48,978 bases of DNA from Octopus bimaculoides (GCF_001194135.2 NC_069002.1:27172848-27221825); one strand, 5' to 3'. Shown: positions 12,941 through 47,904, counted from the first letter of the stretch. Translations and numbers: made by a program. Notes: generated by a model from the sequence alone, not told the origin.

Positions 12941-13240
12941 TTTATTGAGCGAAAACACCTAAAGCTCCACGAGGCTCCGGCAGGGGATGGTGGCAAACCC
13001 TGCTGTACTCTTTCACCACAACTTTCTCTCACTCTTTCTTCCTATTTCTGTTGTGCCTGTAATTCAAAGGGTCAGCCTTGTCACACTGTGACACGCTGAA
13101 TATCCCCGAGAACTACGTTAAGGGTACACGTGTCTGTGGAGTGCTCAGCCACTTGCATGTTAATTTCACGAGCAGGCTGTTCCGTTGATCGGATCAACTG
13201 GAACCCTCAACGTCATAAGCGACGGAGTGCCAACGACAAT
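12941..13240 (+). mobile_element. SINE family C1 copy (head in gap)
   Basis: Closely matches 17406-17705. Confidence 0.85.
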
Positions 13241-14816: not shown

Positions 14817-14977
14817 CTAGAGCAAAGCATCAACAACAATAATGGTAAACTGAAATAAATGATAATTACCAGAACTAGAACAATAATCTGGATAGAAATC
14901 TCCCAGAGACTTGTCTCGTTGACTTAAAATTTTCTGGAACTTTACCTTCCAACGCAGCGGATTGTATTCTGTATCTC
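14817..14977 (-). CDS. SOD-repeat protein gene, probable terminal coding exon with GPI-anchor-like signal
   Basis: ttacattttcag acceptor, phase 1. Encodes (G)DTEYNPLRWKVKFQKILSQRDKSLGDFYPDYCSSSGNYHLFQFTIIVVDALL* with TAG at 14817-14819: small residues (SSSG) then a hydrophobic tail. Confidence 0.8.
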
Positions 14978-15031
14978 CTGAAAATGTAAATTCAGTTTAA
15001 TGATTAATAAATTATCTTTGATAATTATAAA

Positions 15032-15257
15032 GTGGCAAGCTGGAAGAATCATTGGCAAGCCAAGTGAAATGCATAGCGGTAATTTGTCAGTCTTTGACTT
15101 TGCTTTTTATACTTCCGGTGGGGTTGATAAAATATGTGACATTTAATCTTTGGGGATTGATGTAATTGACTTAATCCCCTCCCTTTGTGCCAAAATTTGA
15201 AACCATTATTATCATTATTATGATTATAATTATAATTATTATTATTATTAATATTAC

Positions 15258-15326
<69 letters not shown>

Positions 15327-15578
15327 TACTATTATTATTATTATCATTATCATCATTATTAAGGTGGCAAGCTGGCAGAATCGTTAGCACGCTGGGCAAA
15401 ATGCTTAGCAGCATTTCATCATCTTTACATTTCGAGTTCAAATTCTGTCTAGCTCAACTTTGCCAGTCATCCTTTCAGGGGCCTATAGAATAAGTAATAT
15501 TTGAACCCTGGGGTTAATATAATCAACTTACTCTCATCTTCCCCAAAGTTGTTGGCCTCACGCAAGAGTTTGAAATCA
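15032..15578 (+). mobile_element. Two tandem SINE family B copies separated by (ATT)n at 15203-15360
   Basis: Heads at ~15032 (degraded) and 15361; the first ends CCAAAATTTGAAACC followed by the microsatellite. Confidence 0.75.
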
Positions 15579-15769
15579 ATCGTTACTGTAAATTCGTTAG
15601 AAGATTCTGCTTTTTCTTGCTTGTTTTTAATATATTTGAAAATACTAATATAATTAGAGTCTTGATTCATCAATAATGACTGGATTTTGATATTCTTCAA
15701 ATTAAGATGAAGAGAATACAAAATGAGCTTAACCTTTTCAAACAGCGAGTACGCTATATATTCCTAGAA

Positions 15770-15991
15770 CAGGGGTTTTCAAACTTTTTGATTTGCGGAC
15801 CCCTTTATATTTCAGGCTTTACCCTTATAAACGCTTATGAAATTTATACATAAATATTTGCTTAAAATAACATATATTTTTACATTTATTTATTTAACAT
15901 TATTTAACAAATAGGTTTATTGTCAATTAAAAGATTTCGATTAAAAAACATATATAAAATCAAATTGCGGACCACAGTTTGAAAACTCCTG
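15770..15991. mobile_element. hAT-superfamily MITE
   Basis: 16-bp TIRs CAGGGGTTTTCAAACT / AGTTTGAAAACTCCTG (15/16) and an 8-bp TSD TCCTAGAA at 15762-15769 and 15992-15999. Confidence 0.92.
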
Positions 15992-16227
15992 TCCTAGAAG
16001 ACACAAAAATGGTAGCCAAATGCTTTTGTGTTTATGAATGAAAATAATTATGCTTCTACTAATTAGTGAACTATAAATAGAAAACCATGTAACTGCCTGC
16101 TTTTGTGTCTCCCAGGAGTATAGTCAAAGAGTGTAAGCTCAACATGTTCTGAGCTGAAGTGAAGCATTGCTGTATTTTTGTCTTTTACCTTCACCGTTTA
16201 TTAGAAGAATTCAAAACTAAAACTTAC

Positions 16228-16340
16228 CCAGGAAGTACAGTTTTAATACTCGGCATTTATGTTGGATAGGCAAATGTTCAATTGATAAATGCCAGGCTTC
16301 CGTTTTTAAAGCTTTTGCTATGTCGTTAATTAAATCCACT
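16228..16340 (-). CDS. SOD-repeat protein gene, 113-bp internal exon (C-terminal domain)
   Basis: ttttctttcccag acceptor and G|GTAAGT donor. Encodes (K)VDLINDIAKALKTEAWHLSIEHLPIQHKCRVLKLYFL(G); phases 2/1 fit both neighbours. Confidence 0.85.
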
Positions 16341-16503
16341 CTGGGAAAGAAAAAGTCATTTGTTAGGAAAGTATATTTGAAATACAAGTTGAAATTTCAT
16401 TGATATTGATTGAGAAGTACAAGTGACATAAACAAAACAAATTTATAGTTATTGGAATACACACACACACACAAGTTATGTAAGTATAGACACACATACA
16501 TGT

Positions 16504-16541
<38 letters not shown>

Positions 16542-17318
16542 NNNNNNNNNNNNNNNNNNNNNNNNNNNNNNNNNNNNNNNNNNNNNNNNNNNNNNNNNNN
16601 NNNNNNNNNNNNNNNNNNNNNNNNNNNNNNNNNNNNNNNNNNNNNNNNNNNNNNNNNNNNNNNNNNNNNNNNNNNNNNNNNNNNNNNNNNNNNNNNNNNN
16701 NNNNNNNNNNNNNNNNNNNNNNNNNNNNATGCATATATGGGTACAGGACATAAAAAAAACGTTGAACACAATGAGAAATGGAAACAAAACAAAAACATAG
16801 AAAACGAACATTTTTTTCGAACAACAAAAGAAACAAACAGACAAACTAGACAGGCAACATAAAGAACATTCCCTTCATCAGTTGTCCCCATTCTCATTTC
16901 TCATTTTGTCTACGTTTTTTTGATGTCCTGTACCCATATATGCATGTATATTTTAAAACATTTATAAATTGCAATGAAAGCATATGCAGTGATTTTGGTC
17001 TCACTAACCTTCCATAGTTTGTTTCCTTTTTCCCCCCTCCCCACAATCTTGTTAAACACTAGCCACACTTATGTTGCCCACAGCAGTGTCTCCCTTAGTC
17101 GTGTGCTTGTTTGCACATACTTTTTTTATATAATTGGCACACAAAGGGAAAAAATGTGCTTACATGAAATTTTCAAAATAGTATCAAATTCTGTTAATTG
17201 AAGAAATTAATCAAATAACTGCTTAATAAATTAATCTACACACTTAGGAATGGTGTGCATTTTGTTAGGGAGCCAATATCAATATGGCATTTGAGCAAAG
17301 ATTAACTGCACGGATTGT

Positions 17319-17707
17319 GTGGAGGCGCAATGACCCAGTGGTTAGGGCAGCGGACTCGCGGTCATAGTATCGTGGTTTCGATTCCCAGACCGGGCGTTGT
17401 GAGTGTTTATTGAGCGAAAACACCTAAAGCTCCACGAGGCTCCGGCAGGGGATGGTGGCGAACCCTGCTGTACTCTTCCACCACAACTTTTTCTCTCACT
17501 CTTACTTCCTGTTTCTGTTGTGCCTGTAATTCAAGGGGTCAGCCTTGTCACACTATGTCACACTGAATATCCCTGAGAACTACGTTAAGGGTACACGTGT
17601 CTGTGGAGTGCTCAGCCACTTGCACGTTAATTTCACGAGCAGGCTGTTCCATTGATTGGATCAACTGGAACCCTCAACGTCGTAAGCAATAGAGTGCCAA
17701 CAACAAC
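17319..17707 (+). mobile_element. SINE family C1, full-length (tRNA-derived head, (CAA)n end)
   Basis: A box TGACCCAGTGG (17331-41) and B box GGTTTCGATTCCC (17374-86). Body matches 12941-13240. Confidence 0.88.
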
Positions 17708-18788
17708 CTGCATGGATGTGCTCACATTTGGCAAATGGAAAATTTGCGCACAAGTAAATTTCTACAAGGACCAACAGAGCAAGAAATTAGAGAGAACATT
17801 GGTCCACAACAATTCTAGTTGTAGTTGGAATCATTTATATTTCATCCGATTGGCCAAATTCTTCTCTTATATGAATTTGCACCAAAGAGACAATCAAACC
17901 AATAATTTCAACTCGATGCTTTGCATTGATTGAAAACTGACCAATCAACATAACTCCACAACAACCATCTTGGTGAGCCTAGTAACACCAATAAAAGACC
18001 CTGTTTAGTGGAATTTTGCCTGGAAAGAACTGCTAGCTCTGTGTGTGTGTGGTTGTTTTAACAACCGGTTTTATCAACATGCACACTCACTTTCATACTT
18101 CCTTGCTTCCATAGACAACCAGTCAAGAGAACATAACAAATCTCTGTCTCTCAACTAATCTACTCTTCAACAAAACTTCTATTTCAGAAACAATTTAGAT
18201 TAGAAATTTTGTTAATTCATTGCTACTTACATATATTGACTTTTGACTTCATTGTTCCATACAACTACACACAGCAATTATACCAAATATGAGCAATTAT
18301 GTATAACAAAGATCTTTTGTGTGAATTAATATAATTCACTGCTTGTACAGACACATGAAACCTTTGATTGCATTTTTATTATATTGCTTACGTACACAAG
18401 AAATGAAGCTCTTTGTTAGAAAAGAACATTTCGTCAACTATTGCCGTAAAACCAATCAGACTGACACATCTCGATATAATGTACTTTTTAATGAATAAAA
18501 ATGTTGTTTTACACATAGTCACCTCTCGTCAATTTCTTATTCAGAAATATCCTCCACTCAACAACTTATTTTATTTCTTTTTGTTTAACAGAGAAGCCAG
18601 CTTCAGGTTATGTCAAACTGATGATTTCTAATAAGAACGAAATGGTGCTACACATGATTGTCTATGACTAGAAATCTTTGTAATGTATATGAAAATATTA
18701 AATGTGTTTATTCTATGGTGTTCTTAAAGAGTATATTGATGATAACACGGACAAAGGGTCTAATGAAAAAATGATGACCTGAGCTGCA

Positions 18789-19554
18789 GTAAATTGGAAA
18801 GTGCTTTATGAGATAAGGGCCAAAGCAACTGAGATTTCTTGGTCATGTGATGAGGAAAGAGGGCCCAAAGAGAGTTTAGTGATGACTGGAAAGAAAAAAA
18901 AGAAATGAAGCAGAGGAAGAAGAAAGATGATCTGGTTGTCAAGCTTGAGGAAATGGTTGGAAGAAAGAGACATTAAACATCAGGAATTGGAAACTGTCAC
19001 AGAAAATAAAGAACAGAGAATTGTTGCAGGACATGACAGAAATTGTTTTGTGAGGTAAGGGCCAAAGCAACTGAGAGAGCCTGGAGAATTTAGTGATGAC
19101 TGGAAAGTGGGCCTGGAGAACTTAGTGATGACCGGAAAGATTGAAAGGAAAGGAAATAGAGGAAGGGGAGGGATGAACTTGAAGGGTCAAGCTTGAATTG
19201 GTTGGGAGAAAGAAGGATTAAATATTAGAAAGTGGAAAGGGTACAGAAGACAAAGAACAGAGAATTGTGGCAGGACCTGATAGAAACTGCTTTGTGAGAT
19301 AAGGGCCAAACAACAGAAATATCTTGGTTATGTGATGAGGAAAGCGGGCCTGGAGAATTTAGTGATGAGCGGAAAGATTGAAAAGAAAAGAAACGGTAGA
19401 AGGAGAAGGGTGATATGGATGTCAAGCCTGATGAACTGGTTAGAAGAAAGAGGCATTAAACATCAGGAATTGGAAACTGTTACAGAAAATTAAGAACAGA
19501 GAATTGTAGCAGGACATGATCGCTAATCTCCTACACTCTGGACATGGCACCTAA
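18789..19554 (+). mobile_element. RTE (BovB-like) LINE 3' ORF end, as three tandem ~245-bp copies
   Basis: Decayed translation IRAKQLRFLGHVMRKEG..LVMTGK...RELWQDMIANLLHSGHGT*. Units restart near 18789, 19037 and 19281. Confidence 0.85.
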
Positions 19555-19821
19555 CATTCTATACATATTATTCCTTTGTCTTTGATTTAATATTCAAGCT
19601 TTTAATCCTGCCAAGATTTACCTCGAAATCATTATCTCCCTTACGATAACTGGCCACCAGGGTGCACCACATAATGGATAGAAAGCATTTCTTTTTCCTT
19701 TGGATTAAGGTTAAACTATATATAAACACTTCACTGCTGACATAATTCTGGTTATTAAGCTAACATTTTCATAACTTATAAAAATAAACAAAGATAAAAG
19801 GTGATATATTTGTATAATTAC

Positions 19822-19948
19822 TTGTCAAATGGTTTAGTTCTCCAGTATGACATTTCAACATAGGGTTGCTTCAGAGGGTTGATATCTGCACATGTCATCA
19901 TTTTTTCTCCTTGATTTTCTGAGAAGAACACGAATGATCGGCCATAAA
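19822..19948 (-). CDS. SOD-repeat protein gene, 127-bp internal exon
   Basis: gtgtttttctag acceptor and AA|GTAATT donor. Encodes (V)YGRSFVFFSENQGEKMMTCADINPLKQPYVEMSYWRTKPFD(K), phase 1 in and phase 2 out. Completes LPLFGEWS-VYGRSFVF. Confidence 0.92.
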
Positions 19949-20357
19949 CTAGAAAAACACAAACAAAACAAAATAGATTACAATTAAAAATGATTCATGA
20001 AACAACATTCTTTTGATGATTAGAATATAAACAGTTTATATAGTACAACATCAAAATCACTGTATGGTGGACACATCAGCCTTTTAAACACACACACACA
20101 CTGTTGTTGTTTTTGTTATTGTTTAGCCCCATGAGGGCCCTGATTGAGCAGACTTATGATCAATGACATTCCAGTTATCGCCATCACATCTATATTTCAA
20201 GTGTTAGAGTACTTTCGATAACATTATCCAATTGTGTTTTTCTTAGGGTTGTAGGGTATGATTTGAGTGAAATTTGGCTCCTATTTCTAACATGTCTATC
20301 AACCACTCATGGATGTGCACCTAGATTCATGTATATTCTTTTGGTCATACACTAATC

Positions 20358-20448
20358 ATGCAGAATTTGAACTCAGAACATAAGGACGGATGAAATGCCG
20401 CCAAGCATTTTGCCCATTATGCTAACAATTCTGCCAGCTTGTTGCCTT
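20358..20448 (-). mobile_element. SINE family B head fragment
   Basis: GAATTTGAACTCAGAAC..CTAACAATTCTGCCAGCT..GCCTT. Confidence 0.7.
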
Positions 20449-20462
20449 AATGACGCCGATGA

Positions 20463-21246
20463 TGATGATCATCATCATCATTTAACGTCCATTTTGTATG
20501 CTGGTATGGGTTGGATGGTTTGACCAGGGCTGGCATGCTGGAAGGCTACACCAGACTCCAGTCTGATTTGACATGGTTTCTATGGCTGGATGCCTTATCT
20601 AACACCAACCACTCCAAGATTGTTATGGGTGCTTTCACCCATTACATCCAAGGGCATAGGTGCCATTTGCATGACACTGGTATCTGCTACAACTGCGATT
20701 TTGCTTGGCTTGATGGGTCATCTTCTCAAGCATGACATAATGCCAAAGGCCTTGGTCATTGCTTCCATGAGGCCTAGCACTTGAAAAGTGCCTCAAAATC
20801 ACAGTCATTGCCTCCACGAGGCCCAATGCTCGAAAGGAGTTGAGCCATATTGCTTCTATTAGGCCCAATGCTTGAAAGGTGCTTTTAACGTGCCACCAGC
20901 ATCTGATACGATTGCAATTTCATGTGGTTTGATGGGTCTTCTCAAGCACAGCATATCACCAAATGTATTGGTCACTAGTCATTGCCTCTATGAGGCCCAA
21001 AGCTCTAAAAACATGCTTCACCACCTTGTCCTATGTCTTCCTGGGTCTATCTCTACCACAAGTTACCTCCACAGTTAGAGACTGGCACTTCTTTACACAG
21101 CTGTCCTCATCCATATGCACCACATGACCATACCAGTGCAGTCGTCTCTCTTGCACACCACATCTGATGCCAAACTTTTATCTCAAGATACTTACACTCT
21201 GTCGAGCATTCACACTGACATTACACATCTAGCGAATCATGCTGGC
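20463..21246 (-). mobile_element. RTE LINE 3' fragment (ORF end, repetitive 3' UTR, (GAT)n tail)
   Basis: Minus strand ASMIR*MCNVSV..RQS..GIRCGVQERRLHWYGHVVHMDEDSCVKKC...GRDRPRKT. The UTR ends in the same GGTTGG..TTAGGAAGGGCATC..CCAACCCATGCCAGCATGGAA..(GAT)n module seen at 23.7 kb and 39.4 kb. Confidence 0.85.
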
Positions 21247-21248
21247 TT

Positions 21249-21288
<40 letters not shown>

Positions 21289-21290
21289 GG

Positions 21291-21328
<38 letters not shown>

Positions 21329-21515
21329 AATGATAATAATAATAATAATAATAGTTTCTAATTTAGGTAGAAGGTCATAAATTTGTGAGAGAAAGTTAGT
21401 TAATGCAATCAGCTCCATTACTTGATACAGAAATCAATACAGCAGGATATCAATTCTATTTTTTTTTTTTTTTAATGAGACAGCTGACTTAAAGGAATTT
21501 GTTTGGGATACTTGC

Positions 21516-21657
21516 CTGACCATTCTCCAAAAAGTGGTAGATTCTTATCAACATAGAAGAAACCATTTTCTCCAAGATTGTAAGTTTCATGTTTAGCTGA
21601 TAAATCACCAACAGCACATCTTTCTTGATTGCTAACATCACATTCACCATAACCATT
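21516..21657 (-). CDS. SOD-repeat protein gene, 142-bp internal exon with GC donor
   Basis: ttctttctctttcag acceptor. Encodes NGYGECDVSNQERCAVGDLSAKHETYNLGENGFFYVDKNLPLFGEWS and ends at CAG|GCAAGT; phase 0 in, phase 1 out. Confidence 0.9.
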
Positions 21658-22408
21658 CTGAAAGAGAAAGAAATCAATAGGTTATTTATACTCTATCAGT
21701 GGAAGGGATCCTTATATATATCTAATATATTTCATTTTAACAGCCAAGGGAAATAACCCATTCATTTTCCTAGATCATTTGGTATGAATCAAATTGAGTA
21801 TGTTATGTTTATTAGTATTTGAACTGTTAGAGTTATTTTCACAATTTATCCAGTACAATCCTTAAACAAGTAAATAGTATTCTCCTAAACAATAGATCCA
21901 CTTATTTCGGTTAGTGAGTTATTCGCGAATATACCAACACAAGGGCTGCTGATGGTAATATTCTCTGGGAATGCATAAAAGCCCTTTTCAGAGTTAATTA
22001 CTTTGAATTGTTATTATCTCATATCTGATTAGCCTGTTATTATGCAACATGCTTCACGATTTTAGTATACATACCTTATTAGTATTTCCTCCTATGTTCT
22101 ATATACTCTGGGGACGCATTAAAGCCCTTTTCAGGGCTACTTTATTTGAATTCTTACTAAAGGGTAATTAATTTCATGTTATTACATAACTGATGTCACA
22201 ATTTAGGTATTCATAATTTATTGGGAATTCCTAAAATCAAAATCCTGTGTAAGACAGTTTGGTATTCTCAATAAATGCACGAAAACCGTTTTAAGGGCTA
22301 CATACTTTGTATTGCTGTTATTGGATTAGCGAAACAATTATGACAATGGAACCAAGGGATAAGCCCCGCTTTCCCGGGAATTACCAGGTACATCAGCTAG
22401 TATATATA

Positions 22409-22638
22409 TTGGGTTGTCCGGAAAGTTCATGCCGATTTTTAAAGGAAAAAAAAAAAGGTCAATAAATACTTGCCATTACATTTTTAATCAACCAAATATG
22501 AACCATTTTGTTGCACAATGCATCTCCATCTTTCCTTTAACTTGAAAATACTCTTTTCCCAGAATTGAGGTGGTTTCATGGCAAATAAGTCGAAAGGTAA
22601 GCTACTATAAATCGGCATGAACTTTGCGGACAACCCAA
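22409..22638 (-). mobile_element. mariner deletion derivative (MITE)
   Basis: 30-bp TIRs TTGGGTTGTCCGGAAAGTTCATGCCGATTT / AAATCGGCATGAACTTTGCGGACAACCCAA with TA on the left. The internal remnant reads FWEKSIFKLKERWRCIVQQNGSYLVD* (mariner transposase C-terminus). Confidence 0.9.
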
Positions 22639-22670
22639 GTAGAAGAGTTCAGGTGTTTTATGTTCTATTT

Positions 22671-22960
22671 TGGTGTTTCTCAACCCTTTTGTTACCTATG
22701 GACCCCTTTGATTCTTATTTTACTCAAACGGACCTTCTTAGCCATTTGATGTTTAAAAGACCCTATTATGTTTATATAATTAAATTTTATTAGGAATTGT
22801 ATAAAAAATTTTTTTTATATTTTGTGTATAGAAGAAGTATAACCAATTCATTGCACATAAATTTTAACAAAATCTTATATAAACCCCCTAAATTCATATG
22901 GAGCCTCAAAAGTTTGTATGGATCTTCAAGGGCAATAAAGACCCTGGTTGAGAACCACCA
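22671..22960. mobile_element. hAT-superfamily MITE
   Basis: TIRs TGGTGTTTCTCAACC / GGTTGAGAACCACCA (14/15) and an 8-bp TSD TTCTATTT at 22663-22670 and 22961-22968. Confidence 0.88.
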
Positions 22961-23040
22961 TTCTATTTATTCAAATGTTTGAATGGAAGGGTACTAAAAT
23001 ATTAAGTTTAGAAGCCCTAAAATTCACTCTATAATTGTCC

Positions 23041-23245
23041 ATGGGCATACAACATAATGGTTAAGAGTGCAGGTTACTAACCCCAAGATTCCAAGTTCAA
23101 TTCCAGGCAGTGCCATGAATAAATAATAATGGGTTGGGTTCAAAATTCCACCAGGACACCTGAAGAAGGCTGGAGAGTAAATCAGCCAAAATCTTGTGGT
23201 AACAACAAACAAGATGAGGACAATGTAAATAATGTAAATAATGTT
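23041..23245 (+). mobile_element. tRNA-headed SINE-like element with a Penelope-type hammerhead-like tail
   Basis: Decayed A box ..CATAATGGTTAAG and B box AGTTCAATTCC, an AAT spacer, then GACAC-CTGAAGA-A-GGCTG..CAGCC-AAAAT and an (AATGTAAAT)2 end. Confidence 0.6.
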
Positions 23246-23609
23246 GAATAGAATTGCTTTCATATTTTCACTCCATGAATTTCCAAAGCTTGGTTCAGCT
23301 AAGACTAATAGAGAGTGGGTCCCATAATTTAGATAGGTAAGCTAACTGACCATTCTATGTTCATATTTCTCCTGACGGACCTTTAACCCAACCACTCACT
23401 TTTCACATTTTCAAATTAAATCAAGGTCTCACAAAACATCATTAAAAATACATCAAAAATTGTGGGACGGCCCTCAACTCTTCTTTAATCTCATCATGGA
23501 AACAAAGGTAACCTAAAGCATTTGCTATGTAAATACAGCAAAATATAAAAGATATGTCCTTGCATATAAGCTTGTCCCTTGCATCCCTTTCCAGTTGAGT
23601 ATTCCTAAT

Positions 23610-23900
23610 CTTGTGGGATCATGGGTGCTAGTGCTATGTAAAAAAGCACCCATACCAGTGCCACGTAAATGCAACCATGCCGGTGCTGCTTAAAAGCACC
23701 CAGTACACTCTATAAAGTGGTTGGCATTAGGAAGGGCACCCAGCCAAAGAAATTACACAAAAACAGACATGAAGCTTGGGCAGCTCTTCAAATAGACCCA
23801 CTACATGTCAAACCATCCAACCCATACCAGCATGGAAAATGGACACTAAATGATGAGGATGATGATGATGATGAGGAGGAGGATGACGATGGTGATGATT
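23610..23900 (+). mobile_element. Non-autonomous element or LINE remnant with the RTE 3' UTR module and (GAT)n tail
   Basis: Same 3' module as 20463-20630 and 39410-39590, preceded by short GCACCCAT/GTGCC..GTAAA repeats. Confidence 0.7.
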
Positions 23901-23918
23901 AACTTAACACTTTCTTAC

Positions 23919-24137
23919 GTTGGTATTGACATCAAATGGGTTATACAGTTTTCCGACGCGACTACACGCCCTCTGTACAGCTTCTTCAGTGTTTGCCCTC
24001 CATTCGTCCTCCATCTGATTCTGCCTGTTGTTGTGGCCCTCACCAGAATCCATTGTGTTATAAGCTTTGGTGTCATTGTCATTGAACTGCTGTTCCCATA
24101 TTGGATTGGAAAAGATCTTCCATTCGTGATTGTTGGT
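23919..24137 (-). CDS. SOD-repeat protein gene, 219-bp internal exon
   Basis: ttctttttag acceptor and AAC|GTAAGA donor, phase 0/0. Encodes TNNHEWKIFSNPIWEQ...QRACSRVGKLYNPFDVNTN (HxWxI and C..xG..YNPF motifs). Confidence 0.9.
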
Positions 24138-24254
24138 CTAAAAAGAATTTTATAAATTCATAAAGAACATTTCAATAGAATCAGTGGAACGCACTTCGTT
24201 TAGGACATTCATTTGGCAATAAATAAAGAAATCATTCAATGAATAAATCAGTAA

Positions 24255-24260
24255 ATAAAT

Positions 24261-24300
<40 letters not shown>

Positions 24301-24530
24301 AAAAGAAAGAAAGAAAGAAAGAAAGAAAAAGAAAGAAAGAAAAAGAAAGAAAGAAAAAGAAAGAAAGAAAAAGAAAGAAAGAAAGAAAGAAAGAAAGGAA
24401 GGAAGGAGGGAAGAAGGGAACAAAGGAAGGAACAAAGGAAGGAACGAAGGAAGGAAAGAAAGGAAGACTAGGAAATAAATAAGAAAAAGAAAGGAAGGAA
24501 GGAAGGAAAGGAAAGGAAGAATAAGAAATA
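24255..24530. repeat. Compound (GAAA)n/(GGAA)n microsatellite
   Basis: Seen directly in the sequence. Confidence 0.95.
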
Positions 24531-25038
24531 AAAACAAAAACATTTGAAATATACTCCCAAATATAATTGATAGAACTGTGTACATATTCTCTCTTGTGAG
24601 GACGTCTTGTGTATAGTTCTGCAAATTATATTTTCCATGTCGGTCACACTGACGATTGGCAGATATTTATGTAATATAAATGATAACAATGAAACCATGG
24701 TATGTGACTAATCATTATATTTTGTAGCTTTTCATTTGTCTTGCTTGCTTTACATTCTGGCGTTTGCCGAATTTTCTTGAGAACAAAGTTTCTTAGTAGT
24801 CAGACCATATGGGGTCTACATTTAGCATATTAGGAGTTCACCTAATGGGCATTCCTCTTATATGTATGTAATATAATTTTCTGAATCTTCAGATTTTTTT
24901 CAATATGCTAGGCTACTGGTTTGAATTGATATTAATCTAATTAGTATCAATTTTTTACTCTTATCATATATATATATATATATATATATATGGGCATCCA
25001 GTTGTAGAAACTCTGCCAAATCAGATTGGAGCCTGGTG

Positions 25039-25165
25039 TAGCACTGTTTGGAACCGCTCGTATACTCCGGAAGGTTTTCGAAAAATAAGAGGTGTTACCT
25101 TAGTTCACTGTTAGTGAACAGCTGACACCATAGTACATCTCCAGCATTAGAAGCTGTGCAAATGC
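25039..25165 (+). mobile_element. R4/Dong-like (restriction-like endonuclease) LINE 3' end, 5'-truncated
   Basis: ALFGTARILRKVFEK* plus short UTR, followed by (AAT)n. Nearly identical to 25878-25975. Confidence 0.75.
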
Positions 25166-25209
<44 letters not shown>

Positions 25210-25218
25210 TAATAATAA

Positions 25219-25732
25219 ATGCCCGGATGCAGTACCAGGCAGTAGCNNNNNNNNNNTGTCTTGGTATAAAAGATGGGCTACAGCAAATATTCTGCTTAAT
25301 ACCACAGATTTGCTTGTCAGTTGTTTGACCGTAACCAGTTGAACATGTCCCTTGGTGGCTGACAATATGTGCATCTCTGATCATGAGCAGAAGTAGTTAG
25401 GGAGCATCATAGCCATATGTTGAGAGGAGTTCTTTGGGGTTTGAATAATTCACCTTTGGAAACATGGGTGTTTTGCTCAACACCCTTAAACAAATCTTAT
25501 TCAGGGACCTTTTGAGCCGGATGGGCTACTTGACCTGAAGAAAATTCTAACTGAGCCCCACATGAGAGGTCATGCACTGTTTATCTTGATATGAGATCAC
25601 CATGTCGCACACATATGGTTGTGATGCATGTGCCTGGTGTACCCTTATCAGACGGGTAGTCATGATGGGTACACTGGGCTTCGTATATTTTACCCCAGTG
25701 TCACTTTGATGGCATGCACTGCTCTCTCACTC
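25219..25732. repeat. Unclassified GC-richer interspersed element bounded by (AAT)n tracts
   Basis: Sharp composition boundaries, an (AAT)n tract at each end, and no long ORF. Confidence 0.45.
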
Positions 25733-25766
25733 AATAATAATAATAGTAATTAATAATAATAATAAT

Positions 25767-25975
25767 GATAGAAGTACGTGGAACAAATAGAGGCTGCAAT
25801 AAGGGTGGAGCACTATCTTGAGAAGTACAAGGAACAAATAGGGGCTACAATAAGGGTGAAGCACTTGCAGAAAATAGCACTGTTTGGAACCGCTCGTATA
25901 CTCCGGAAGGTTTTCGAAAAATAAGAGGTGTTACCTTAGTTCACTGTTAGTGAACAGCTGACACCGTAGTACATC
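25767..25975 (+). mobile_element. R4/Dong-like LINE 3' end within (AAT)n
   Basis: EKYKEQIGATIRVKHLQKIALFGTARILRKVFEK*, the LQK..LLGTA.ILR terminal motif of RLE LINEs. (AAT)n on both sides. Confidence 0.8.
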
Positions 25976-26108
25976 TCACTCAATAATAATAATAATAATA
26001 ATGATAATAACAGTAACAATGATAATGGTGGTGGTAAAAAGATTAATTTGTTTTTCTTACAGGTGTGTATAGTAAATGACAGTTAACAAAGGATTTTTTT
26101 CTTCTTAC

Positions 26109-26186
26109 CATGTGACCTTCTTTGCTGTGAACATCTATATAAACCCAAGTTTCGGTTGTATGGCCATCCCCGTAGACATATTGCCA
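26109..26186 (-). CDS. SOD-repeat protein gene, 78-bp internal exon
   Basis: tttgtttcag acceptor and ATG|GTAAGA donor, phase 0/0. Encodes WQYVYGDGHTTETWVYIDVHSKEGHM, continuing GYVQM in the same way as the G.V.F.Q...T.I.V strands of the other repeats. Confidence 0.85.
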
Positions 26187-26284
26187 CTGAAACAAATTAC
26201 AGCAGTGAGGGTAACAAAAAAGACATTGAGGTGAAAAAACTAATTAACAGAAGAGAGAAAAAGAATTGGGGAGTTGAAGCAAGT

Positions 26285-26479
26285 GTTGTTGTTGTTGTTG
26301 ATAATGATGATGATGATGACAATGAAGATAGTGGTGGTGGTGGTGGTGGTGGCGGTTTGATGTTATTGTTGCTGCTCCTGTTGATGTCATTATCGTCTTT
26401 GTTATTGTTGATGCCACCTCCGCCAGCCCTGACACCGATAACAACAACGATGATGATGATGATGGTGATGATGGTGATG

Positions 26480-26511
<32 letters not shown>

Positions 26512-26550
26512 GGTGATTATCATGGTGATGATGGTGGTAGTGGTGGTGAG
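26285..26550. repeat. Compound (GTT)/(GAT)/(GGT) trinucleotide microsatellite region
   Basis: Seen directly in the sequence. Confidence 0.9.
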
Positions 26551-27040
26551 AATGGTTAGGGTTTTAATGACTATTTTGTCCTACAGGTAGATCAGTCATG
26601 ATTGTATGGCCAGACATACGACAAAATACAAACCAACTGTGGTCATTCCATTCTTACCATTTAAAAACTCACTTTAACCATTTAATAACCCGTTTTAACA
26701 ATTAAAAAACTCATCTTAAAAATTTACTGTTTTGTATGTCTTATTTTGGTTAAAATGGTTCTTTTCTGCAAAGTAATTCTTACAGAAACATTTTAATAAA
26801 ACTTTGGAAGAAATTTGCTATTTGGGTAGGAACTGTTTATCTACATATATGACCATCACTGCTCACCTTTTCAGTGATGTGTGTGGGTGTGTGAGAGAGA
26901 AAGAGACACAAAGGGAGATAGAAAAGAAAAAAGTAAAAGAGTTATAGAGAAAGAAGTGCATATATATATATTATATTATATTATATTATATTATATTATA
27001 TTATATTTTATTATATATATATATTATTATATTATATTTC

Positions 27041-27222
27041 AATTTCATGTTACACATGTTTCGTTACAGAATAGGAGTTACAAAGTATGTATACATGTAG
27101 AAAACATATTTGGGATCTCCTTTGTCTAAAGAATTACAGATAGGAGATCCCTAACACGTTTTCTACATGTATATATACTTTGCAACTCCTATTCTGTAAC
27201 AAAACGTGTGTAACATGGAGTT
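27041..27222. repeat. Long inverted repeat (foldback), arms ~80 bp at ~90% identity
   Basis: CATGTTACACA..GGGATCTCCT (from 27046) pairs with AGGAGATCCC..TGTGTAACATG (to 27217); spacer ~18-20 nt. Confidence 0.92.
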
Positions 27223-28511
27223 AAAAATATACCATATTTCCTGGTCATTGTCTTAGTATATACTTACTCGGCAAATATAATTTACCAGAACTTTCAACTG
27301 GTATGTAAGCTACACTTGAAATAAATCATCTATATACATATATTTGATTGCTGGAACATACTATGTGTTACATCTTTAAGTTATAAGATGTAGCACAGAT
27401 GTGTGTGTGTGTATATGTGTGCGTGTGCATGCTTATGTGCATGCATGCTTGTTTGCATGCATATGCATGTGTTAATTTTCTTTGAGTCATATTCAAGTTC
27501 ATCTTAAGACAGCAGACGAAGTAACAACAAGAATGGTTGCCAATGAAGTAACAACACTTTCTGAGTTAAAAGAGTTCCTGGTGTTTTAATATGTGGCTGA
27601 GTTGTTGTGTTGGTTGAGCTGTTGGCACACACACCAAAGTGTGCGCATCTATTCCCCAAATGAATCTCAGATGGAGATTCTTTGGAATGTCATACAAATC
27701 TGTAAGTCATAAGAATATGTATATATGTACTTGAAGGTACTATATGACAGGAATTATTGGATGATTGTCAAAAGTTTTGTCTTTATGCCACATATCAAAG
27801 CAAGAAGTTCAACATGCCAAACAAATTATCTCTCCACCAAACGAAACAACATCAAGAGAAATTCCATAACTGGGAATCAAACCTTTGTTGAAGATTTTGC
27901 TTGTCAAAAGCAGCACGCCATTGAGAATGTACAAACACACACATGCACACATATACACACACACATGTATGCATGCATATATATGTGCAATTATGCAATT
28001 ATATATATATATGCAATTATATATATATAATTAAAATCAAAATTAAAGCAGAGAGTTTATCTCACGATTCGAGTTTCATGCCAGTGCAATCATCATTAGA
28101 TCTTGCCTGATGATCACACTGGCATGAAGCTCAAGGCACACTACACAAGCTCTCAGTTTTAATTTTAACAACAAAAGCATATCCTCTACAACATGTATTG
28201 AGCACTCCTTTCTCATTTGTTTGACATTAATAACATATGACTATATATATATATACATACACACACAAGAATGAATGAAACTGATTCTAATTTAGGCACA
28301 AAGCCACTAATACTTTGAAAAGTGGGGTTTGGTAAATTTAATCTGCCCCAGTATTTGTCTAGTACTTTACTTTATCAACACCTGAGGGATGAAAATTGAC
28401 CATGGTAGAATTTGAACTCATAACATAAAGATTAATAACAAATACCGCTACCCACTTTTTTCTGCCGACCAACTGCTCTTATATATAATGATATAAATAT
28501 AATAAAATAAA

Positions 28512-28759
28512 TGTGCCCTTTTAAAGCCTAGCCAGGCTCATGGGCCCGGCTTTCCAGTTTCAATGGCGTATGTGTTCCCCAGCTGGACGGGACGCTAGTC
28601 CATCACAGCATTACTCATTTTTGCCAGCTGAGTGGACTGCAGCAATGTGAAATGAAGTGTTTTGCTCAAGAACACAACGCGTTGCCCGGTCCAGGAATTG
28701 AAACCACAATCTTACAATCATGATGCTGACACCCTAACCACTAAGCCATGCACCTCCAC
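28512..28759 (-). mobile_element. SINE family D (C2-type head and body, V-domain-like 3' part)
   Basis: Head GTGGAGGTGCATGGCTTAGTGG..GGTTTCAATTCC, C2 body, then GATGGACTAGCGTCCCGTCCAG (V-domain-like by recollection). Matching fragment at 47180-47290(+). Confidence 0.75.
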
Positions 28760-28806
28760 AATGTAATATAATATATAATATTTTTAAAGATATATTTTCA
28801 ACTCAC

Positions 28807-30740
28807 CATTTGCACATACCCATAAATTGAGCCCCACAAATCAATTCGTGCTTCCCATCGTTCAGCCTTAGAATAATCAAAAGAGAAGTTACCACATCCT
28901 TTCAGGTTCTTATAGTCATAAGACACAGCCATCGCTCTCTCCATTACACTTGCAGGTCCGTAAAGACACAGATTATAATCTCGCATTTTTCTTCTATCCT
29001 TTCCGCGGTCTTCAAAATAACCAAATTTGCCACTCATGTCTCCCATGGGATATTGACTTGGAGATCCTTGTCCAACTGAGGGTAAACTCTCTGGAGGAAT
29101 GCTAAAAGGGTTCCAAATTGATGAAAGTGCTGTCTTGGAGCAGGATTGATGACTATCTTCAACTGCAGGATTAGAATAAATTGCCCAAGAATTTATTCCA
29201 TTATTTAAGCCATCCATATTCATAGAGACCATGGGTGCATCGAACTCAGTTTCTTGTGTAAAGGTTATTTTACCTTGAAGCTGAGTTTTAGAATCAATCA
29301 GGTGTGGCATTGTGGCTTGGTATGGCCAGTGGCGGTAGATTGTTGCACATGCAAGTCTGTTCTGTCTGTTTGTATCAAATATAACAACAGAAGTTCCTTC
29401 TACACTGTAGGGTCCATGGAGTGGCAAAAAAGTTGTTGTCATGAACGTCTTCTTGGCTGGTTGCCGTTTAGCACCAGATCGAATTTGTATTCCTCCCAGT
29501 CGTTTCGTTGTATCACCAACTGCACAATGAAAACCACGTTCTCTGGTACAGGTTTCATTATATTGTCCATCTAGACGAAGATTAAAAGGGTTGAACACAT
29601 TCCCTGTTGAACTGCATCTTCGAGCACTATCCTTGTCATTCCAATCAGTTGACCTCCGTTCTGCAATTTTCCAAACATGATCTGTAGTTGGTCCAGACCC
29701 ATCACTGTAATCAAGTTCAAAATAGATCGATGTATCTGACATAGCATCGGATTTACTTTGTCTCAGCATCATATAACCAAGCACGGGGTACCAAAATTTT
29801 GCCATAAGAATCACTGTGTCTTCTGGATAGTTAACATTGGCACAAAACCAGCGACTACCATCTGTTCTGTGTACAACAAAAGATCGTCCAATGATGCTAT
29901 ATTCTTCAAACAGGGGTAAGTTCCAGTCCCAATATACTTCCGAGAAGCTGTCACGACCATTCAACTTACCAAATTTACCACTCAAATCACCAACTTCATA
30001 TTGGTCATTAGTACCATTTCCAGGTGGTGGTGATTCACTTTTTTTGACTTGAAAAGGATTCCAGTGACCAGAAATTTCATCGTTTGAACATTGGTCATTT
30101 AGTGAAATGCGTTGAGGAACTGGATATACATGTATATGGTAAGCAGAAGCACGATCATTGAGGTCGTTGAAGTTCACTTGAAGAATTGTTGGATCGTATG
30201 GTGAATCTTGTTCAAAACGCACATAACCATAAGCTCCGTCACCATCAAAGTTGACCTGTGCTGTCTTATGTGTGTATGTTTGGATAAAACTACAAGCAAT
30301 CACTTCATCGTTTTCATCAACAATTCCGATCCATTTACCAATAATGTTGTTAGTACCAGTCAACCATATATTTGGTTCCACCCAAGCTTCTCTGGCATCA
30401 TATGGTAAATTACCTACAGGTAACATAGGTAGGTTCTCCACCCTATTTCGGGGTTGGTAACGAGTTTTCAGTGAACGACACATGGTAGCAGATTCTGTTC
30501 TGCTAGTTGGATGAAAGAAATACCATTTATAAGAAGCCCGTTGTTGGCTTCCTGGGGCCATGTAGAACAAATCTGAATAAATAGTTGTATAATTAGATTG
30601 CTCATGCTGCCGGAAAATAACACGACCACCTATGGAATTTTGAAGACGTGCATAAGCTGTTACATGACGTCCTTTAAACATAATAGTGGCACAGGCTGGG
30701 TCTTTTACAGACCGGTTAGGCTTTAGAAGCAGAGTGTAAC
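28807..30740 (-). CDS. SOD-repeat protein gene, 1934-bp main exon (end of repeat 1, repeats 2-5, start of repeat 6); CSRP-like
   Basis: Stop-free frame for 644 codons; ttttttcttctacttcag acceptor and ATG|GTGAGT donor. Repeated SOD motifs: YHIH..GHWNP..EVGDLSGKFG..LPLF..SIIGRSFVVH..GSRWFCA; CAVGDTTKRLG..LPLHGPYSVEG..RLACATI; PMGDMSGKFG..LCLYGPASVM. The ORF track covers 28798-30681 only because it starts at an internal ATG and reads into the donor. Confidence 0.96.
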
Positions 30741-30945
30741 CTGAAGTAGAAGAAAAAAATTTAATTTAGCGTTTGGAGTAAAAGTGACCAATCAAATTAA
30801 ATTAAATCCAAATCCAAAACAACAAAAAAGATAACGAGTTTAAAAGCATGTTATTTACTGAGCTCTTAATTAACAGGGATCTATTTTTTCATGTTTATAC
30901 AACAGTTACATATATACATATGGGTGTGTGTGAGCATGTGTGTGG

Positions 30946-31002
<57 letters not shown>

Positions 31003-31113
31003 AATATATCAATTAAGGTGAAAGACAAAATTCAAAGAATTCACTATTCTTAAAACAAAGGAAAAACAGAAAGGGACAAAAGTAAATAACAAAATAAAGA
31101 ATAGATCACAAAC

Positions 31114-31205
31114 CTAGAATTCCGTTTAAGCCCCAAAGGTTCACTGTACGTGCAGTACTTTGTTCTTCATTGCCAAGAGTAACAGTTCCGGTTTCGGGTG
31201 TAAAC
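31114..31205 (-). CDS. SOD-repeat protein gene, 92-bp internal exon
   Basis: ataattctag acceptor and G|GTTTGT donor. Encodes (R)FTPETGTVTLGNEEQSTARTVNLWGLNGIL(G), phase 2 in and phase 1 out. LWGLNGILG-YTLLL parallels the LPLFxxxSIIGRSxV strand of SOD folds and joins the next exon in frame. Confidence 0.8.
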
Positions 31206-32584
31206 CTAGAATTATTATGCAAAGAAAGCCTTCATATTGTCATTGAATTGAATCATGTCATTAATTAAAATTAATTTGATTACATTAAGTTAAATTAAGT
31301 AATTATATTAATTATAAGCCAAGAATCAGAAAAAAATAAAGATGTGTACAGATACACACACATATTTATATATGTGCACACATGCACACATACACATCCA
31401 CAAATATTGATACGTTTAGATGGATATAGTATAACCATCTCGCATAGACTTAAGTAACTGAAAAGTGTCTATTTACGAACAAGAAAAATAACAATTTATA
31501 AGGGATAAGAGGTTAATAGGTTATTCACATATATGCATATATACACATATACAAATATCAATACGTTTATATGGATATAGTATGACCATCTTGCATAGAC
31601 CTAAGTAGATGAAAAATCTCTGTTTAAGAAAAGTAACAACTTATAAGGGATAAGAGGTTAATAGGTAAGGATATGAAAATAAGAAAACAAAATAAAAATT
31701 TATAGAAAATAATAAGAAATACATATAACCTACATTTAAAGAGAGGCTATTAAAATTTGAGGTAGAGAATAGATAAAGGTAACCTGAAAAGAGGAGGTAG
31801 TAGGTATGGGGGTAGTGAGGGCAGTTAAAGGTATTCAGACCAAAGAGATTCTATAAGTTGTAATGTTACAGGTGCTATTATATATATAGGATTTTATAGT
31901 TTCTAGGGGGTATGTAATTAGGAGACTTGCTTACATAAAAGCCATTACAAATATATATGAAATGATCAGTAGGGTAGAACATCATAGAAAGGAACAAATA
32001 GTTTAATCACCAAAATATAGTGAAGTCAGACAAACTAGGTAGGAGTTATCATGGGATAGTAACTACATATAGCACACCATATACCATAGCATATAGCTTA
32101 TAATATATGCAATGCAATTTAATTCACCATATAACATAATATGCCATGATTTTATTATATTTAATACTCGAGAGTAAGTTTACAATGGATACGACACCAA
32201 AATTAATTTCCGCCATCAAATTTCAAGTATGCCACCTATGATCGTTAATCTCAAAAATACTTAAATGTATGGGTGACGATATGCACACATGATTTCCTTA
32301 GGTCTAATCTATTATTAATCAGGTTGTTCTTGTCCCTGTACTTAAAAATCTCATAAGTTTCCATAGAGCACAGCTCACATCCGTATCGACTATCTCTATA
32401 AGGCTGATGTAATGATTGCATTGTTCAATTAAATGGAGCTGCTTGAAACGGTCGTACTGCATCACTTCTTAATATCCTGTTGCTTATTTTGATTTTATTC
32501 ACCTTACTTTGAGGTGTGCGGATAATACCAGACTGAATTGGTGCTTCAACTTAAGTACCTAATTCAAATAAATCTCAATTATTC

Positions 32585-32833
32585 ATTTATATACTCTTAC
32601 TCTTTACTCTTTTACTTGTTTCAGTCATTTGACTGGACCCATGCTGGAGCACTGTCTTTAGTCGAGCAAATCGACCCCAGGACTTATTCTTTGGAAGCCT
32701 AGTACTTATTCTATTGGTCTCTTTTTGCTGAACCACTAAGTTACGGGGACGTAAACACACCAGCATTGGTTGTCAAGCGATGGGACAAACATAGACACAC
32801 AAACACACTTACACATATATATATATATATATA
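32585..32833 (-). mobile_element. SINE family A copy (3' half)
   Basis: Reverse complement of 4230-4436. Confidence 0.85.
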
Positions 32834-33042
32834 NNNNNNNNNNNNNNNNNNNNNNNNNNNNNNNNNNNNNNNNNNNNNNNNNNNNNNNNNNNNNNNNNNN
32901 NNNNNNNNNNNNNNNNNNNNNNNNNNNNNNNNNNNNNNNNNNNNNNNNNNNNNNNNNNNNNNNNNNNNNNNNNNNNNNNNNNNNNNNNNNNNNNNNNNNN
33001 NNNNNNNNNNNNNNNNNNNNNNNNNNNNNNNNNNNNNNNNNN

Positions 33043-33114
<72 letters not shown>

Positions 33115-34020
33115 GGTATATCTAGAAGACCCAAAGAGTGGCAGGTAACGCTAAGTATGTGCTATGGACAGACAATAGTTAAACTCTTGGTTCAATAGTG
33201 ATACGAGTGAAGAGTCTAACAGGGTATTTTATTAGCATGCATATATATATATTAGACAAAATAAGATAACAAAACCAAGGCTGTGAGGATTTTTCAGGAC
33301 GTTTATAAGGAAAAAGATATAGATATAGTTTTACAGCTGTTTCTGGGATATTATGGATATCCTTCATCAGAGACGATGTGAGATGGTTAAATGGAGGTAA
33401 ATATTTGAGTTCGAAATAAGGGATTATTATGGAAGAGGAGGAGATAGGGAATATAGAGGGAAATAAGAGAATGAAAGTAGAAATAAAAATATAAAATATA
33501 TAAAGATATTGTAGTTGCAGTTCCATTATTCAAGGAAAGTGGTGCTAAAATGTTTCCTGTACATGGTATGTAAGTTCCACTAGTAGTTCATGTTTAGTCC
33601 TTTTAAAGAATGGAACCGTGGATTTTGTGTTGCTCATTCAAATGGGATTCCAGTTTGTTGTGATAGGACACTTTTGAACTCAGAATGCACAGAGCTGGAA
33701 CAGACAGTGCAAAGCATATGTCCTGATCCTTAACAATTCTGCCAATCTACCCACTTTATTGGTTCTAATTTTTATTGATTTCAAAATTGAATAAAAATCA
33801 ATAAAAATTTATTTTTATTGATTTTAAAACAAAGTTTATTGTGTTGGAATTCAACTCAGAGCACATAAAATTGATACAAATATCACTGGGATACTATCTT
33901 GCACTCTAATGATTCTGCTAATAGTTTTTCCTGCAGCAGGATTAATCCTTATGTAATTGCACCAGTCACTGTTTTATGATTTTTTTTCTGCTCATATATG
34001 ACACCTAATGCCATTATATA

Positions 34021-34297
34021 AAGGGCAGTTGTGGCAGTGTGGTAAGAAGTTTACTTCCCAACTATATGGCTGTGGGTCAATCCCACTGCATGCACCTAGG
34101 GCAGGTGTCTTCTACTATAGCCTCAGGCCAGCCAAAGCTTTGAAACCTAGCAGTTCAGCAAAAGAGATTGATAAAATGAATACTTGGCTACAAAAAAAAA
34201 AAAAAAACCATACTGGTCTTGAATCATTCAAATAAAATTCTTCAAGGCAATACTCCAGCATGGTCTGAAGCAAGTAAGCGATAAAGGATAAAAGATA
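34021..34297 (+). mobile_element. SINE family A with tRNA-like head, internally deleted and old
   Basis: A-box-like TGGCAGTGTGG and B-box-like GGGTCAATCCC, then the family A body jumping to the 3' part. Confidence 0.7.
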
Positions 34298-34410
34298 GTT
34301 GTTTGTTAAGTCTATAATTCACATCTAATTCAAATTTAATGTCCTTCAGATAATATACAGGATAAGACAAAAAGCAAAACCAGGAATTATTGGAGAATTA
34401 AATAACTTAC

Positions 34411-34450
34411 CTTTCACCAATATAGCGTTCATTGCATTTATCTACTTCAC
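34411..34450 (-). CDS. SOD-repeat protein gene, most upstream visible exon (partial; 5' part lies in N-gap 34451-34863)
   Basis: Reads (x)EVDKCNERYIGE(R) and ends at AG|GTAAGT. The phase-2 end matches the phase-2 start of the 31205 exon, giving CNERYIGER-FTP, which resembles the C..xG..(F/Y)NP segment of the other repeats. Confidence 0.6.
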
Positions 34451-35645: not shown

Positions 35646-35694
<49 letters not shown>

Positions 35695-35974
35695 GCATGA
35701 ATATATGTAAATATATATGTGTACAAGTATATATGTGTGTCTGTGTGTGTGTGTATGTGCATATATAAATATATATATGTGTGTGTGTGTGTATATTATA
35801 TGAATATATATGCATGCAAATGTGTGTGTCTGTGCATGCATGTATAGTTATATATCATCATCATCATCATCATCAGCTGGTTCTTGTATCCAAAAATTTC
35901 AGTTTCTTCTTGATTGAGTGGTTCCTTCATATTGGTGCCATTCATAACTGAGAAAGTCAAGTCATTGTTCACAC

Positions 35975-36072
35975 AAGCATCATTAAGTCTACCTTTCTTT
36001 CTGAGAGAGAAACCTTTTGCTGCCAACAGAGGTAATAGATGTCTGAACTTCATCCATCCTAATCTTATATAT
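35975..36072 (-). mobile_element. RTE LINE post-RT fragment
   Basis: RLGWMKFRHLLPLLAAKGFSLRKKGRLNDACV matches the RTE RI..AW..FR.L..LL.....K.RLY.ACV region. Confidence 0.7.
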
Positions 36073-36590: not shown

Positions 36591-36626
<36 letters not shown>

Positions 36627-47829: not shown

Positions 47830-47899
<70 letters not shown>

Positions 47900-47904
47900 A
47901 TGCA

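Follow-up and report, generated by a model that had tools for sequence, protein, structure and literature searches.

The window analysed here, 48,978 nucleotides of AT-rich animal DNA from Octopus bimaculoides (GCF_001194135.2 NC_069002.1:27172848-27221825) with many microsatellites and 12 runs of N, carries on its minus strand, from position 34450 down to 14817, a locus that is very probably most of the O. bimaculoides ortholog of CSRP, the Cu-only superoxide dismutase (SOD) repeat protein known as cusr in fish and as SOD4 in amphibians. The complete product would be an extracellular protein of about 1040 amino acids made of six tandem SOD-type Greek-key beta-barrels (R1 to R6), a small non-SOD beta-alpha-beta-beta-alpha domain and a hydrophobic C-terminal signal of the glycosylphosphatidylinositol (GPI) type. 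A preliminary description, made from the sequence alone, had already assigned the locus to the CSRP family, and the cusr/CSRP homologs and the Pfam Sod_Cu matches reported below bear this out.

A homolog search with a 655-aa query from the large exon returned 185 matches (E=0 to 1e-93 over 90-99% of the query), nearly all of them proteins of about 950-1100 aa and many named cusr, from molluscs, echinoderms, hemichordates, arthropods, sharks, bony fishes and amphibians. The top match is Octopus vulgaris XP_029649477.2, an "uncharacterized protein LOC115223173" that is 93% identical over the large exon (E=0). Pfam Sod_Cu was found in four stretches of the joined protein (E=1.8e-25), which is the outcome of a profile check of the HMMER type that the preliminary description had proposed, and in six stretches of a chiton ortholog; the best match by sequence in the PDB is Candida albicans SOD5 (4n3t, E=2.7e-8). 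The members of the family compared here (oyster CSRP, zebrafish cusr and Xenopus CSRP), which is present in marine invertebrates and anamniotes, share with the octopus protein a length near 1000 aa, a tandem array of six Cu-only-SOD-like barrels joined by short linkers, copper-less R1 and R2, a conserved disulfide pair in each repeat and, as predicted for octopus from its orthologs, a hydrophobic C-terminal signal. The two degenerate N-terminal folds had been presented as additions to a four-domain family; this part of the claim has to be given up, since six repeats and copper-less N-terminal repeats are the CSRP norm according to PMC13017621. A literature search for copper-only SOD together with octopus found no paper.

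The exons were placed with the O. vulgaris protein (P0001, 1039 aa) as a guide, this being the closest full-length relative. With it, tblastn gives nine colinear pieces in the window that cover residues 77-1019 unbroken. Joined from 34450 down to 14817, the nine minus-strand exons make 2906 nt and a 967-aa frame whose one stop is terminal; every intron ends in AG, seven of them begin with GT and one with GC, and the intron phases, with the junctions read base by base, are 2,1,0,0,0,1,2,1. The nine exons, their phases and the length of about 965 aa were thus correctly described beforehand. The gene was also said to be mostly invisible among the open reading frames (ORFs), which is overstated: the longest open frame of the locus (28801-30765, minus strand, 655 codons) is accompanied by several short ones, and 1934 of the 2906 nt lie in one open frame, seen as a 627-aa ORF. 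The exons, all on the minus strand, are as follows.

34411-34450: 3' end of coding exon 2, EVDKCNERYIGE-R, including the conserved repeat 1 Cys; donor AG/GTAAGT, phase 2; truncated by the gap 34451-34863
31114-31205: coding exon 3, repeat 1 strands 5-7; phase 2 in, 1 out; 97.8% nucleotide identity to O. vulgaris, boundaries identical
28807-30740: coding exon 4, 1934 nt; runs from the end of repeat 1 through repeats 2-5 into the beginning of repeat 6
26109-26186: coding exon 5, repeat 6 strands 2-3; phase 0 in and out
23919-24137: coding exon 6, repeat 6, with a 45-aa acidic insertion and the site of the lost HxH motif (K..F)
21516-21657: coding exon 7, repeat 6, followed by a GC-AG intron, phase 1
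19822-19948: coding exon 8, which completes repeat 6 and opens the C-terminal domain; phase 1 in, 2 out
16228-16340: coding exon 9, C-terminal beta-alpha-beta-beta-alpha domain
14870-14977: coding exon 10 proper, ending ...DYCSSS-G; donor G/GTAATT, phase 1, also used in the O. vulgaris model
14817-14869: read-through of the last intron, NYHLFQFTIIVVDALL and a stop, holding the last 51 nt of the nine-exon model; most likely non-coding

Coding exon 4 by itself gives three Sod_Cu stretches and is 93% identical to P0001 over 645 aa without a gap. The GC donor (CAG/GCAAGT, 21510-21515, minus strand) follows an exon, 21516-21657, whose boundary is identical in O. vulgaris. The assembly gaps at 32834-33042, 25247-25256 and 16542-16728 lie in introns 1, 4 and 7 of the model and leave the coding sequence uninterrupted; they hide no exon, because the O. 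vulgaris ortholog aligns unbroken across residues 77-1019. The O. vulgaris RefSeq model has 11 coding exons, nine of which are found in the window, exon 2 only partly. The extent originally given for the gene is therefore right for the middle exons and wrong at the ends, where the model is truncated on both sides of the real gene: the O. vulgaris model has an exon 1, a full exon 2 and a last exon that the window lacks by reason of its edge and of assembly gaps.

The comparison with O. vulgaris (locus L001) suggests that this is a gene in use. Every exon boundary in the window is an exon boundary there. Nucleotide identity of the exons is 79-98%, with 95% for the 1934-nt exon, which makes up two thirds of the coding sequence, and a lower 80-83% for the more diverged C-terminal exons; the intron blocks that align are mostly 80-88% identical. 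Differences are commoner at third codon positions (8.5%, versus 5.9% and 5.0%). A further protein, P0002, from a related cephalopod and 73% identical, comes from a 4260-nt contig (L002, run ERR12374249) in which its 3147-nt ORF runs uninterrupted and intron-less, so that the contig is a transcript. The P0002 protein reads through all eight junctions of the model and is thus transcript-level support for the splicing pattern, from a related species and not from O. bimaculoides. Taken together, the Sod_Cu and ortholog E-values and the shared exon boundaries put the exon model and domain content, as read from the sequence, far beyond chance.

That the locus might instead be a pseudogene or an assembly chimera holding no working gene is hardly credible. 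One could point to the many N gaps and transposon fragments in and around it, and to the absence of both gene ends from the sequenced part. Against this, the 967 codons contain neither a frameshift nor an internal stop, each of the eight introns begins with GT or GC and ends in AG, conservation is higher in the main exon than in most introns and its differences are in excess at third positions, and colinearity with the O. vulgaris locus extends over window 48691 to 11229. With the frame intact and this colinearity, both readings were rejected.

The repeat structure was examined in an alignment of 102 sequences, cut (in O. vulgaris numbering) into R1 20-147, R2 148-283, R3 284-425, R4 426-590, R5 591-737, R6 738-926 and a C-terminal segment, whose profiles were compared pairwise by hhalign. 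In the window the repeats map as follows, again on the minus strand.

19878-34448: repeats R1-R6, the whole array
30274-30675: repeat 2, a copper-less SOD-fold barrel with no copper histidine and two Cys
29824-30273: repeat 3, which alone has its Cu-only SOD active site intact; two Cys
29329-29823: repeat 4, SOD fold with copper ligands replaced (K, A, V, F); four Cys
28888-29328: repeat 5, SOD fold with copper ligands replaced (A, Y, I, S)

All 15 pairs among R1-R6 are matched by hhalign with 97.5-100% probability. For R1 and R2 against R3-R6 the values are 98.6-99.9%, for R1 against R2 97.5%, over 112-141 columns, and the E-values reach 2e-37 (R2 with R4) and 2e-30 (R2 with R6). AlphaFold was given the full O. 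vulgaris protein with 100 homologs, which is 93% identical to the window protein, and returned six barrels, with eight strands each in R1 and R2, at a mean predicted local distance difference test score (pLDDT) of 90.8 and a predicted template modelling score (pTM) of 0.89; the latter predicts confident packing between repeats. A Foldseek search of the PDB with the full model retrieves SODs, with Candida SOD5 as the best single-domain match (template modelling score 0.71-0.78). The preliminary description had set the folding of the first ~190 aa as Greek-key barrels as a test of its reading beforehand. When R1 and R2 were modelled on their own, the result (pLDDT 90.9) again had eight strands in each, and the top 50 Foldseek matches were all Cu/Zn or Cu-only SODs; the tethered SOD1 dimer 6dtk aligns with this model over 329 columns, and both N-terminal barrels are therefore matched. 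The two N-terminal segments are, as modelled, SOD beta-barrels, and there are six repeats in total, as originally proposed from motif spacing and now upheld by hhalign, AlphaFold and Foldseek. The window itself holds 5.5 of the six. The first repeat, formerly described as short, only looks so because the gap 34451-34863 removes its first four strands; the O. vulgaris exon codes for residues ~14-89.

Nearly or fully invariant cysteines are found at P0001 positions 81/136, 207/269, 337/419, 495/517/525/584, 653/735 and 840/861/869/922, and the cysteine counts of the window are equal; by its sequence, each repeat has a conserved Cys pair for an intramolecular disulfide. A separate observation is that hhalign splits the odd repeats (R1/R3/R5) from the even ones (R2/R4/R6): same-class pairs score E=2.6e-68 (R3-R5) and 2.5e-54 (R4-R6), whereas cross-class pairs are weaker, with 1.2e-35 (R3-R4) and 5.1e-33 (R4-R5). 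These two sequence classes suggest that a two-repeat unit was triplicated to give the six-repeat CSRP, an idea that we did not find stated in the searched parts of two CSRP papers.

The copper-ligand columns and the Glu/Asp pair were tabulated for each repeat in the 102 sequences. In the window, R3 reads HHHH with E/D, R4 KAVF, R5 AYIS and R6 KFLF. The R3 ligands are His245 (30136-30138), His247 (30130-30132), His269 (30064-30066) and His334 (29869-29871), with the signature residues Glu292 (29995-29997) and Asp295 (29986-29988), all on the minus strand. R3 matches Candida SOD5 (4n3t), the prototype of the fungal Cu-only SODs, residue for residue at the HxH motif, the next His, E110/D113, the last His, both disulfide cysteines and the short loop VII after the last His. 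The difference lies in architecture: SOD5 is a single domain of about 25 kDa, while in the octopus protein one such domain stands among five copper-less copies in one polypeptide. In R1 and R2 the HxH motif, the bridging-position His and the fourth His are all missing, in octopus as in the other orthologs shown in the alignment. All four copper histidines are lost in R4, R5 and R6, and these losses are common to both other cephalopod sequences. The claim of four full-length SOD folds therefore stands for the folds, R3-R6, and fails for the copper ligands, kept only in R3, which alone appears plausible as a catalytic centre.

An assignment to the canonical Cu/Zn SODs was considered and rejected. 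SOD1 and SOD3 share with the octopus protein the eight-stranded Greek-key barrel, the copper histidines and the disulfide. Human SOD1 has zinc ligands His71 and His80 and 25 residues between its last copper His and its C-terminal Cys. R3 has a Glu at the position of His80 and no His in the zinc-loop segment (none for His71), hence no zinc site; with 8 residues from the last copper His to the C-terminal Cys, it also differs from SOD1 in that the electrostatic loop is absent. The absence of a zinc site and of an extended loop VII was examined residue by residue in the sequence of R3 alone.

Across the alignment, the chiton and bivalves have four copper sites (R3-R6) and most fishes three (R3-R5), while the octopus has R3 only. 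This pattern is also seen in Daphnia (P0102) and in one further sequence (P0041). R3 ligands are intact in most of the 101 orthologs examined. By these sequences the octopus is near the low end of the range of CSRP copper-site numbers; variation of this number from lineage to lineage is, according to PMC13017621, a known property of the family. The O. vulgaris protein is like the window in its six repeats and C-terminal domain and in having its sole intact copper site in R3, and unlike it in an acidic insertion of R6 that is 8 codons shorter.

This insertion, of 37-45 aa, occurs in the three cephalopod sequences alone, all other aligned sequences having at most 13 residues there; in the window it is 45 aa long, is encoded by exon 23919-24137 and is modelled as a low-confidence helix. 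The domain that follows R6 (residues ~930-1002 in the O. vulgaris model, pLDDT >90 over most of its length) matches no family in Pfam scans of five orthologs, the only hits being Hemotin and CAMSAP_CH at E 0.07-0.14, and hhalign gives it less than 2% probability against each SOD repeat. It is, on its sequence, a conserved, non-SOD domain unrelated to the repeats, in agreement with the separate C-terminal domain noted earlier.

We turn to the two ends of the gene, where our conclusions depart from the preliminary description. Two gaps matter here.

12380-12940: gap predicted to hold the true last coding exon (~65 nt, hydrophobic GPI-signal tail), between colinear flanking blocks and outside 14817-34450
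34451-34863: gap hiding the 5' ~220 nt of coding exon 2 and with them the first half of repeat 1 (residues ~14-76 in O. vulgaris)

At the C-terminus, the nine-exon model runs on past the donor into NYHLFQFTIIVVDALL and a stop, which had been described as a GPI-like tail. In O. vulgaris the exon ends ...CNSS-G, and what follows, gtaattatcatttatttcag..., is the counterpart of this read-through and intronic; the RefSeq model splices at G/GT to a separate last exon 1.1 kb downstream, which codes for (G)ILTGSIVLSMVVFLLKGFFL and the stop, and this is the real tail. The P0002 tail, FLTSSIVLTACLLLFQRLFY, is homologous to the O. vulgaris tail and differs from the read-through. Judged by eye, the orthologs end in a run of 20 mostly hydrophobic residues that is preceded by small ones (SSG or SAG). 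We considered a tiny intron from GTAATT to TTTCAG within 14817-14869 and rejected it as too short (~19 nt). Neither tblastn with the 20-residue tail of the ortholog over the whole window (no new piece) nor blastn-short with the O. vulgaris last exon (only chance matches of 10-15 nt, also over the whole window) located the missing exon. Colinear blocks (L001 71725-72180 with window 13678-13238, and L001 72841-74000 with window 12376-11229) flank the O. vulgaris last exon at L001 72526-72590, and because they flank the expected position and no match exists elsewhere in the window, the true last exon is predicted to lie inside the gap 12380-12940. The sequence beside this gap (window 12941-13237, minus strand) is an element resembling a short interspersed element (SINE), ending ...GAGCTTTAGGTGTTTTCGCTCAATAAA; at its place O. 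vulgaris has a TG/TATG microsatellite of ~300 bp just upstream of the last exon.

At the N-terminus, O. vulgaris exon 2 (L001 ~50395-50659, residues ~14-89) is represented in the window by its last 40 nt. On the flanks of the gap 34451-34863, window 34450-34344 aligns from L001 50619 onward and window 34865-35370 corresponds to L001 49951-49453. The signal-peptide exon had been expected inside this gap. The O. vulgaris RefSeq exon 1, which codes for the first 13 residues, is at L001 10001-10039, about 40 kb upstream, and window 34865-48691 is colinear with L001 49951-23454, within O. vulgaris intron 1; the window thus ends inside the orthologous intron, and the counterpart of this RefSeq exon therefore lies beyond it. 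A tblastn search with the first 76 residues of the ortholog gave no new piece in the whole window. The N-termini of the orthologs, MIKAVFTFLLLLY... and MNPRLGLLICLAAIVHSAGA..., are hydrophobic as judged by eye.

We think it improbable, then, that the nine-exon model is complete as first read, with the gene ending at 14817, SSSGNYHLFQFTIIVVDALL as its GPI signal and the signal-peptide exon in the gap 34451-34863. It is true that the read-through is open for 16 codons, is hydrophobic and shows one substitution relative to O. vulgaris, and that O. vulgaris has an in-frame ATG and a short hydrophobic stretch just upstream of exon 2, whose counterpart would fall in that gap. However, P0001 and P0002 both splice at the G/GT donor to a homologous 20-residue tail (ILTGSIVL... 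and FLTSSIVL...), the hydrophobic stretch of the read-through is only 13 residues long and includes an Asp, and conservation of ~50 nt beside a splice site is expected anyway at this divergence; the position of RefSeq exon 1, with the window ending in the orthologous intron, also speaks against it.

By homology, the protein would be secreted and tethered by a GPI anchor to the outer face of the membrane. R3 would acquire one copper extracellularly and disproportionate superoxide like Candida SOD5 and oyster CSRP; the recombinant oyster protein has SOD activity (PMC12217663, as summarised in PMC13017621). The five copper-less barrels and the C-terminal domain may form a compact rigid scaffold or a chaperone-like support. 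Alternatively, the octopus protein would have essentially no catalytic role and would serve outside the cell as a scaffold or recognition protein that does not depend on copper, as with oyster dominin or arthropod CSRPs, its R3 site being a relic. The lack of copper ligands in five of the six repeats would fit such a protein, as would the loss of ligands, in all three cephalopod sequences, from the R4-R6 repeats that bind copper in bivalves and chiton; copper-less CSRPs, according to the review PMC13017621, fold alike and are expressed, and such a role has been proposed there for arthropod CSRPs. We nevertheless consider this unlikely, as the four His, the Glu/Asp pair and both Cys of R3 are kept in all three cephalopod sequences, which are 73-93% identical overall, and its ligands are intact in most orthologs; this conservation indicates selection on the site.

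Several points weigh against our identification of a secreted, GPI-anchored, copper-dependent CSRP, and should be acknowledged. The support for splicing comes from relatives rather than from expression or splice data of O. bimaculoides itself, and the modelled structure is that of the O. vulgaris ortholog rather than of the window's own product. That R3 binds copper and has SOD activity is deduced from conserved residues only, and since five of the six barrels are copper-less, the protein could act mainly in a non-catalytic way. The signal peptide and the GPI signal cannot be read in the sequenced window and are taken from orthologs by eye. O. vulgaris exon 1 rests on a RefSeq model, and the in-frame ATG just upstream of O. 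vulgaris exon 2 (MFSFLSAVSPTTAYEPY) could be an alternative start, in the window inside the gap 34451-34863.

All in all, the gene is an ordinary ortholog within a known family, its cephalopod-specific features are minor, and it offers little new biology: the family, its six-repeat architecture and the copper-less N-terminal repeats are published, and the O. vulgaris ortholog is in RefSeq, unnamed. The one-site pattern adds a cephalopod data point to the known lineage variation in CSRP copper sites. More tentatively, it is possible that cephalopod CSRPs were remodelled from a multi-site extracellular SOD to a single catalytic barrel (R3) on five copper-less barrels, with a lineage-specific, acidic, partly helical insertion in R6; if this remodelling is true, the insertion could be a new interaction or regulatory surface. 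For annotation, CSRP/cusr is the appropriate name for the locus, a first and a last exon, hidden here by the window edge and the assembly gaps, have to be added to its model, and the read-through tail should be left out of the coding sequence. Octopus arm regeneration would be a natural place for testing the proposed link between CSRP and regeneration.

Some features of the surrounding sequence may be mentioned. Long trinucleotide and low-complexity tracts in the introns (15171-15441, 21221-21418, 24153-24666 and 26197-26590) give spurious ORFs of 60-170 codons on both strands (poly-Ile, poly-Asn and poly-Ser/Phe/Leu). A dispersed SINE-like repeat of ~280-360 bp is present at 42516-42798 (minus), 4073-4437 (minus), 8377-8698 (plus), 32585-32833 (plus) and 10047-10176 (minus), with at least 10 copies also in O. 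vulgaris intron 1; several copies adjoin N gaps and are thus the likely cause of those gaps. The segment 40606-41429 is single-copy in the window and has about four tandem copies, spaced by ~2.86 kb, in O. vulgaris intron 1 (L001 ~33960-42830), so that it was either expanded in O. vulgaris or collapsed in this assembly, a gap (39133-39241) lying nearby. At 43345-45173 (plus strand) there is a cluster of AT-rich open frames of 91-163 codons in which no Pfam family scores above the curated cut-off; its part 44303-45173 lies in blocks (44303-45847) that are 90-94% identical to O. vulgaris intron 1, most other intron blocks being 77-88% identical. Downstream of the gene, a 217-codon frame at 11025-11675 (plus strand) resembles the start of a reverse transcriptase (Pfam RVT_1, E=5e-5, below the curated cut-off) and is probably a fragment of a retrotransposon of the kind without long terminal repeats (non-LTR).

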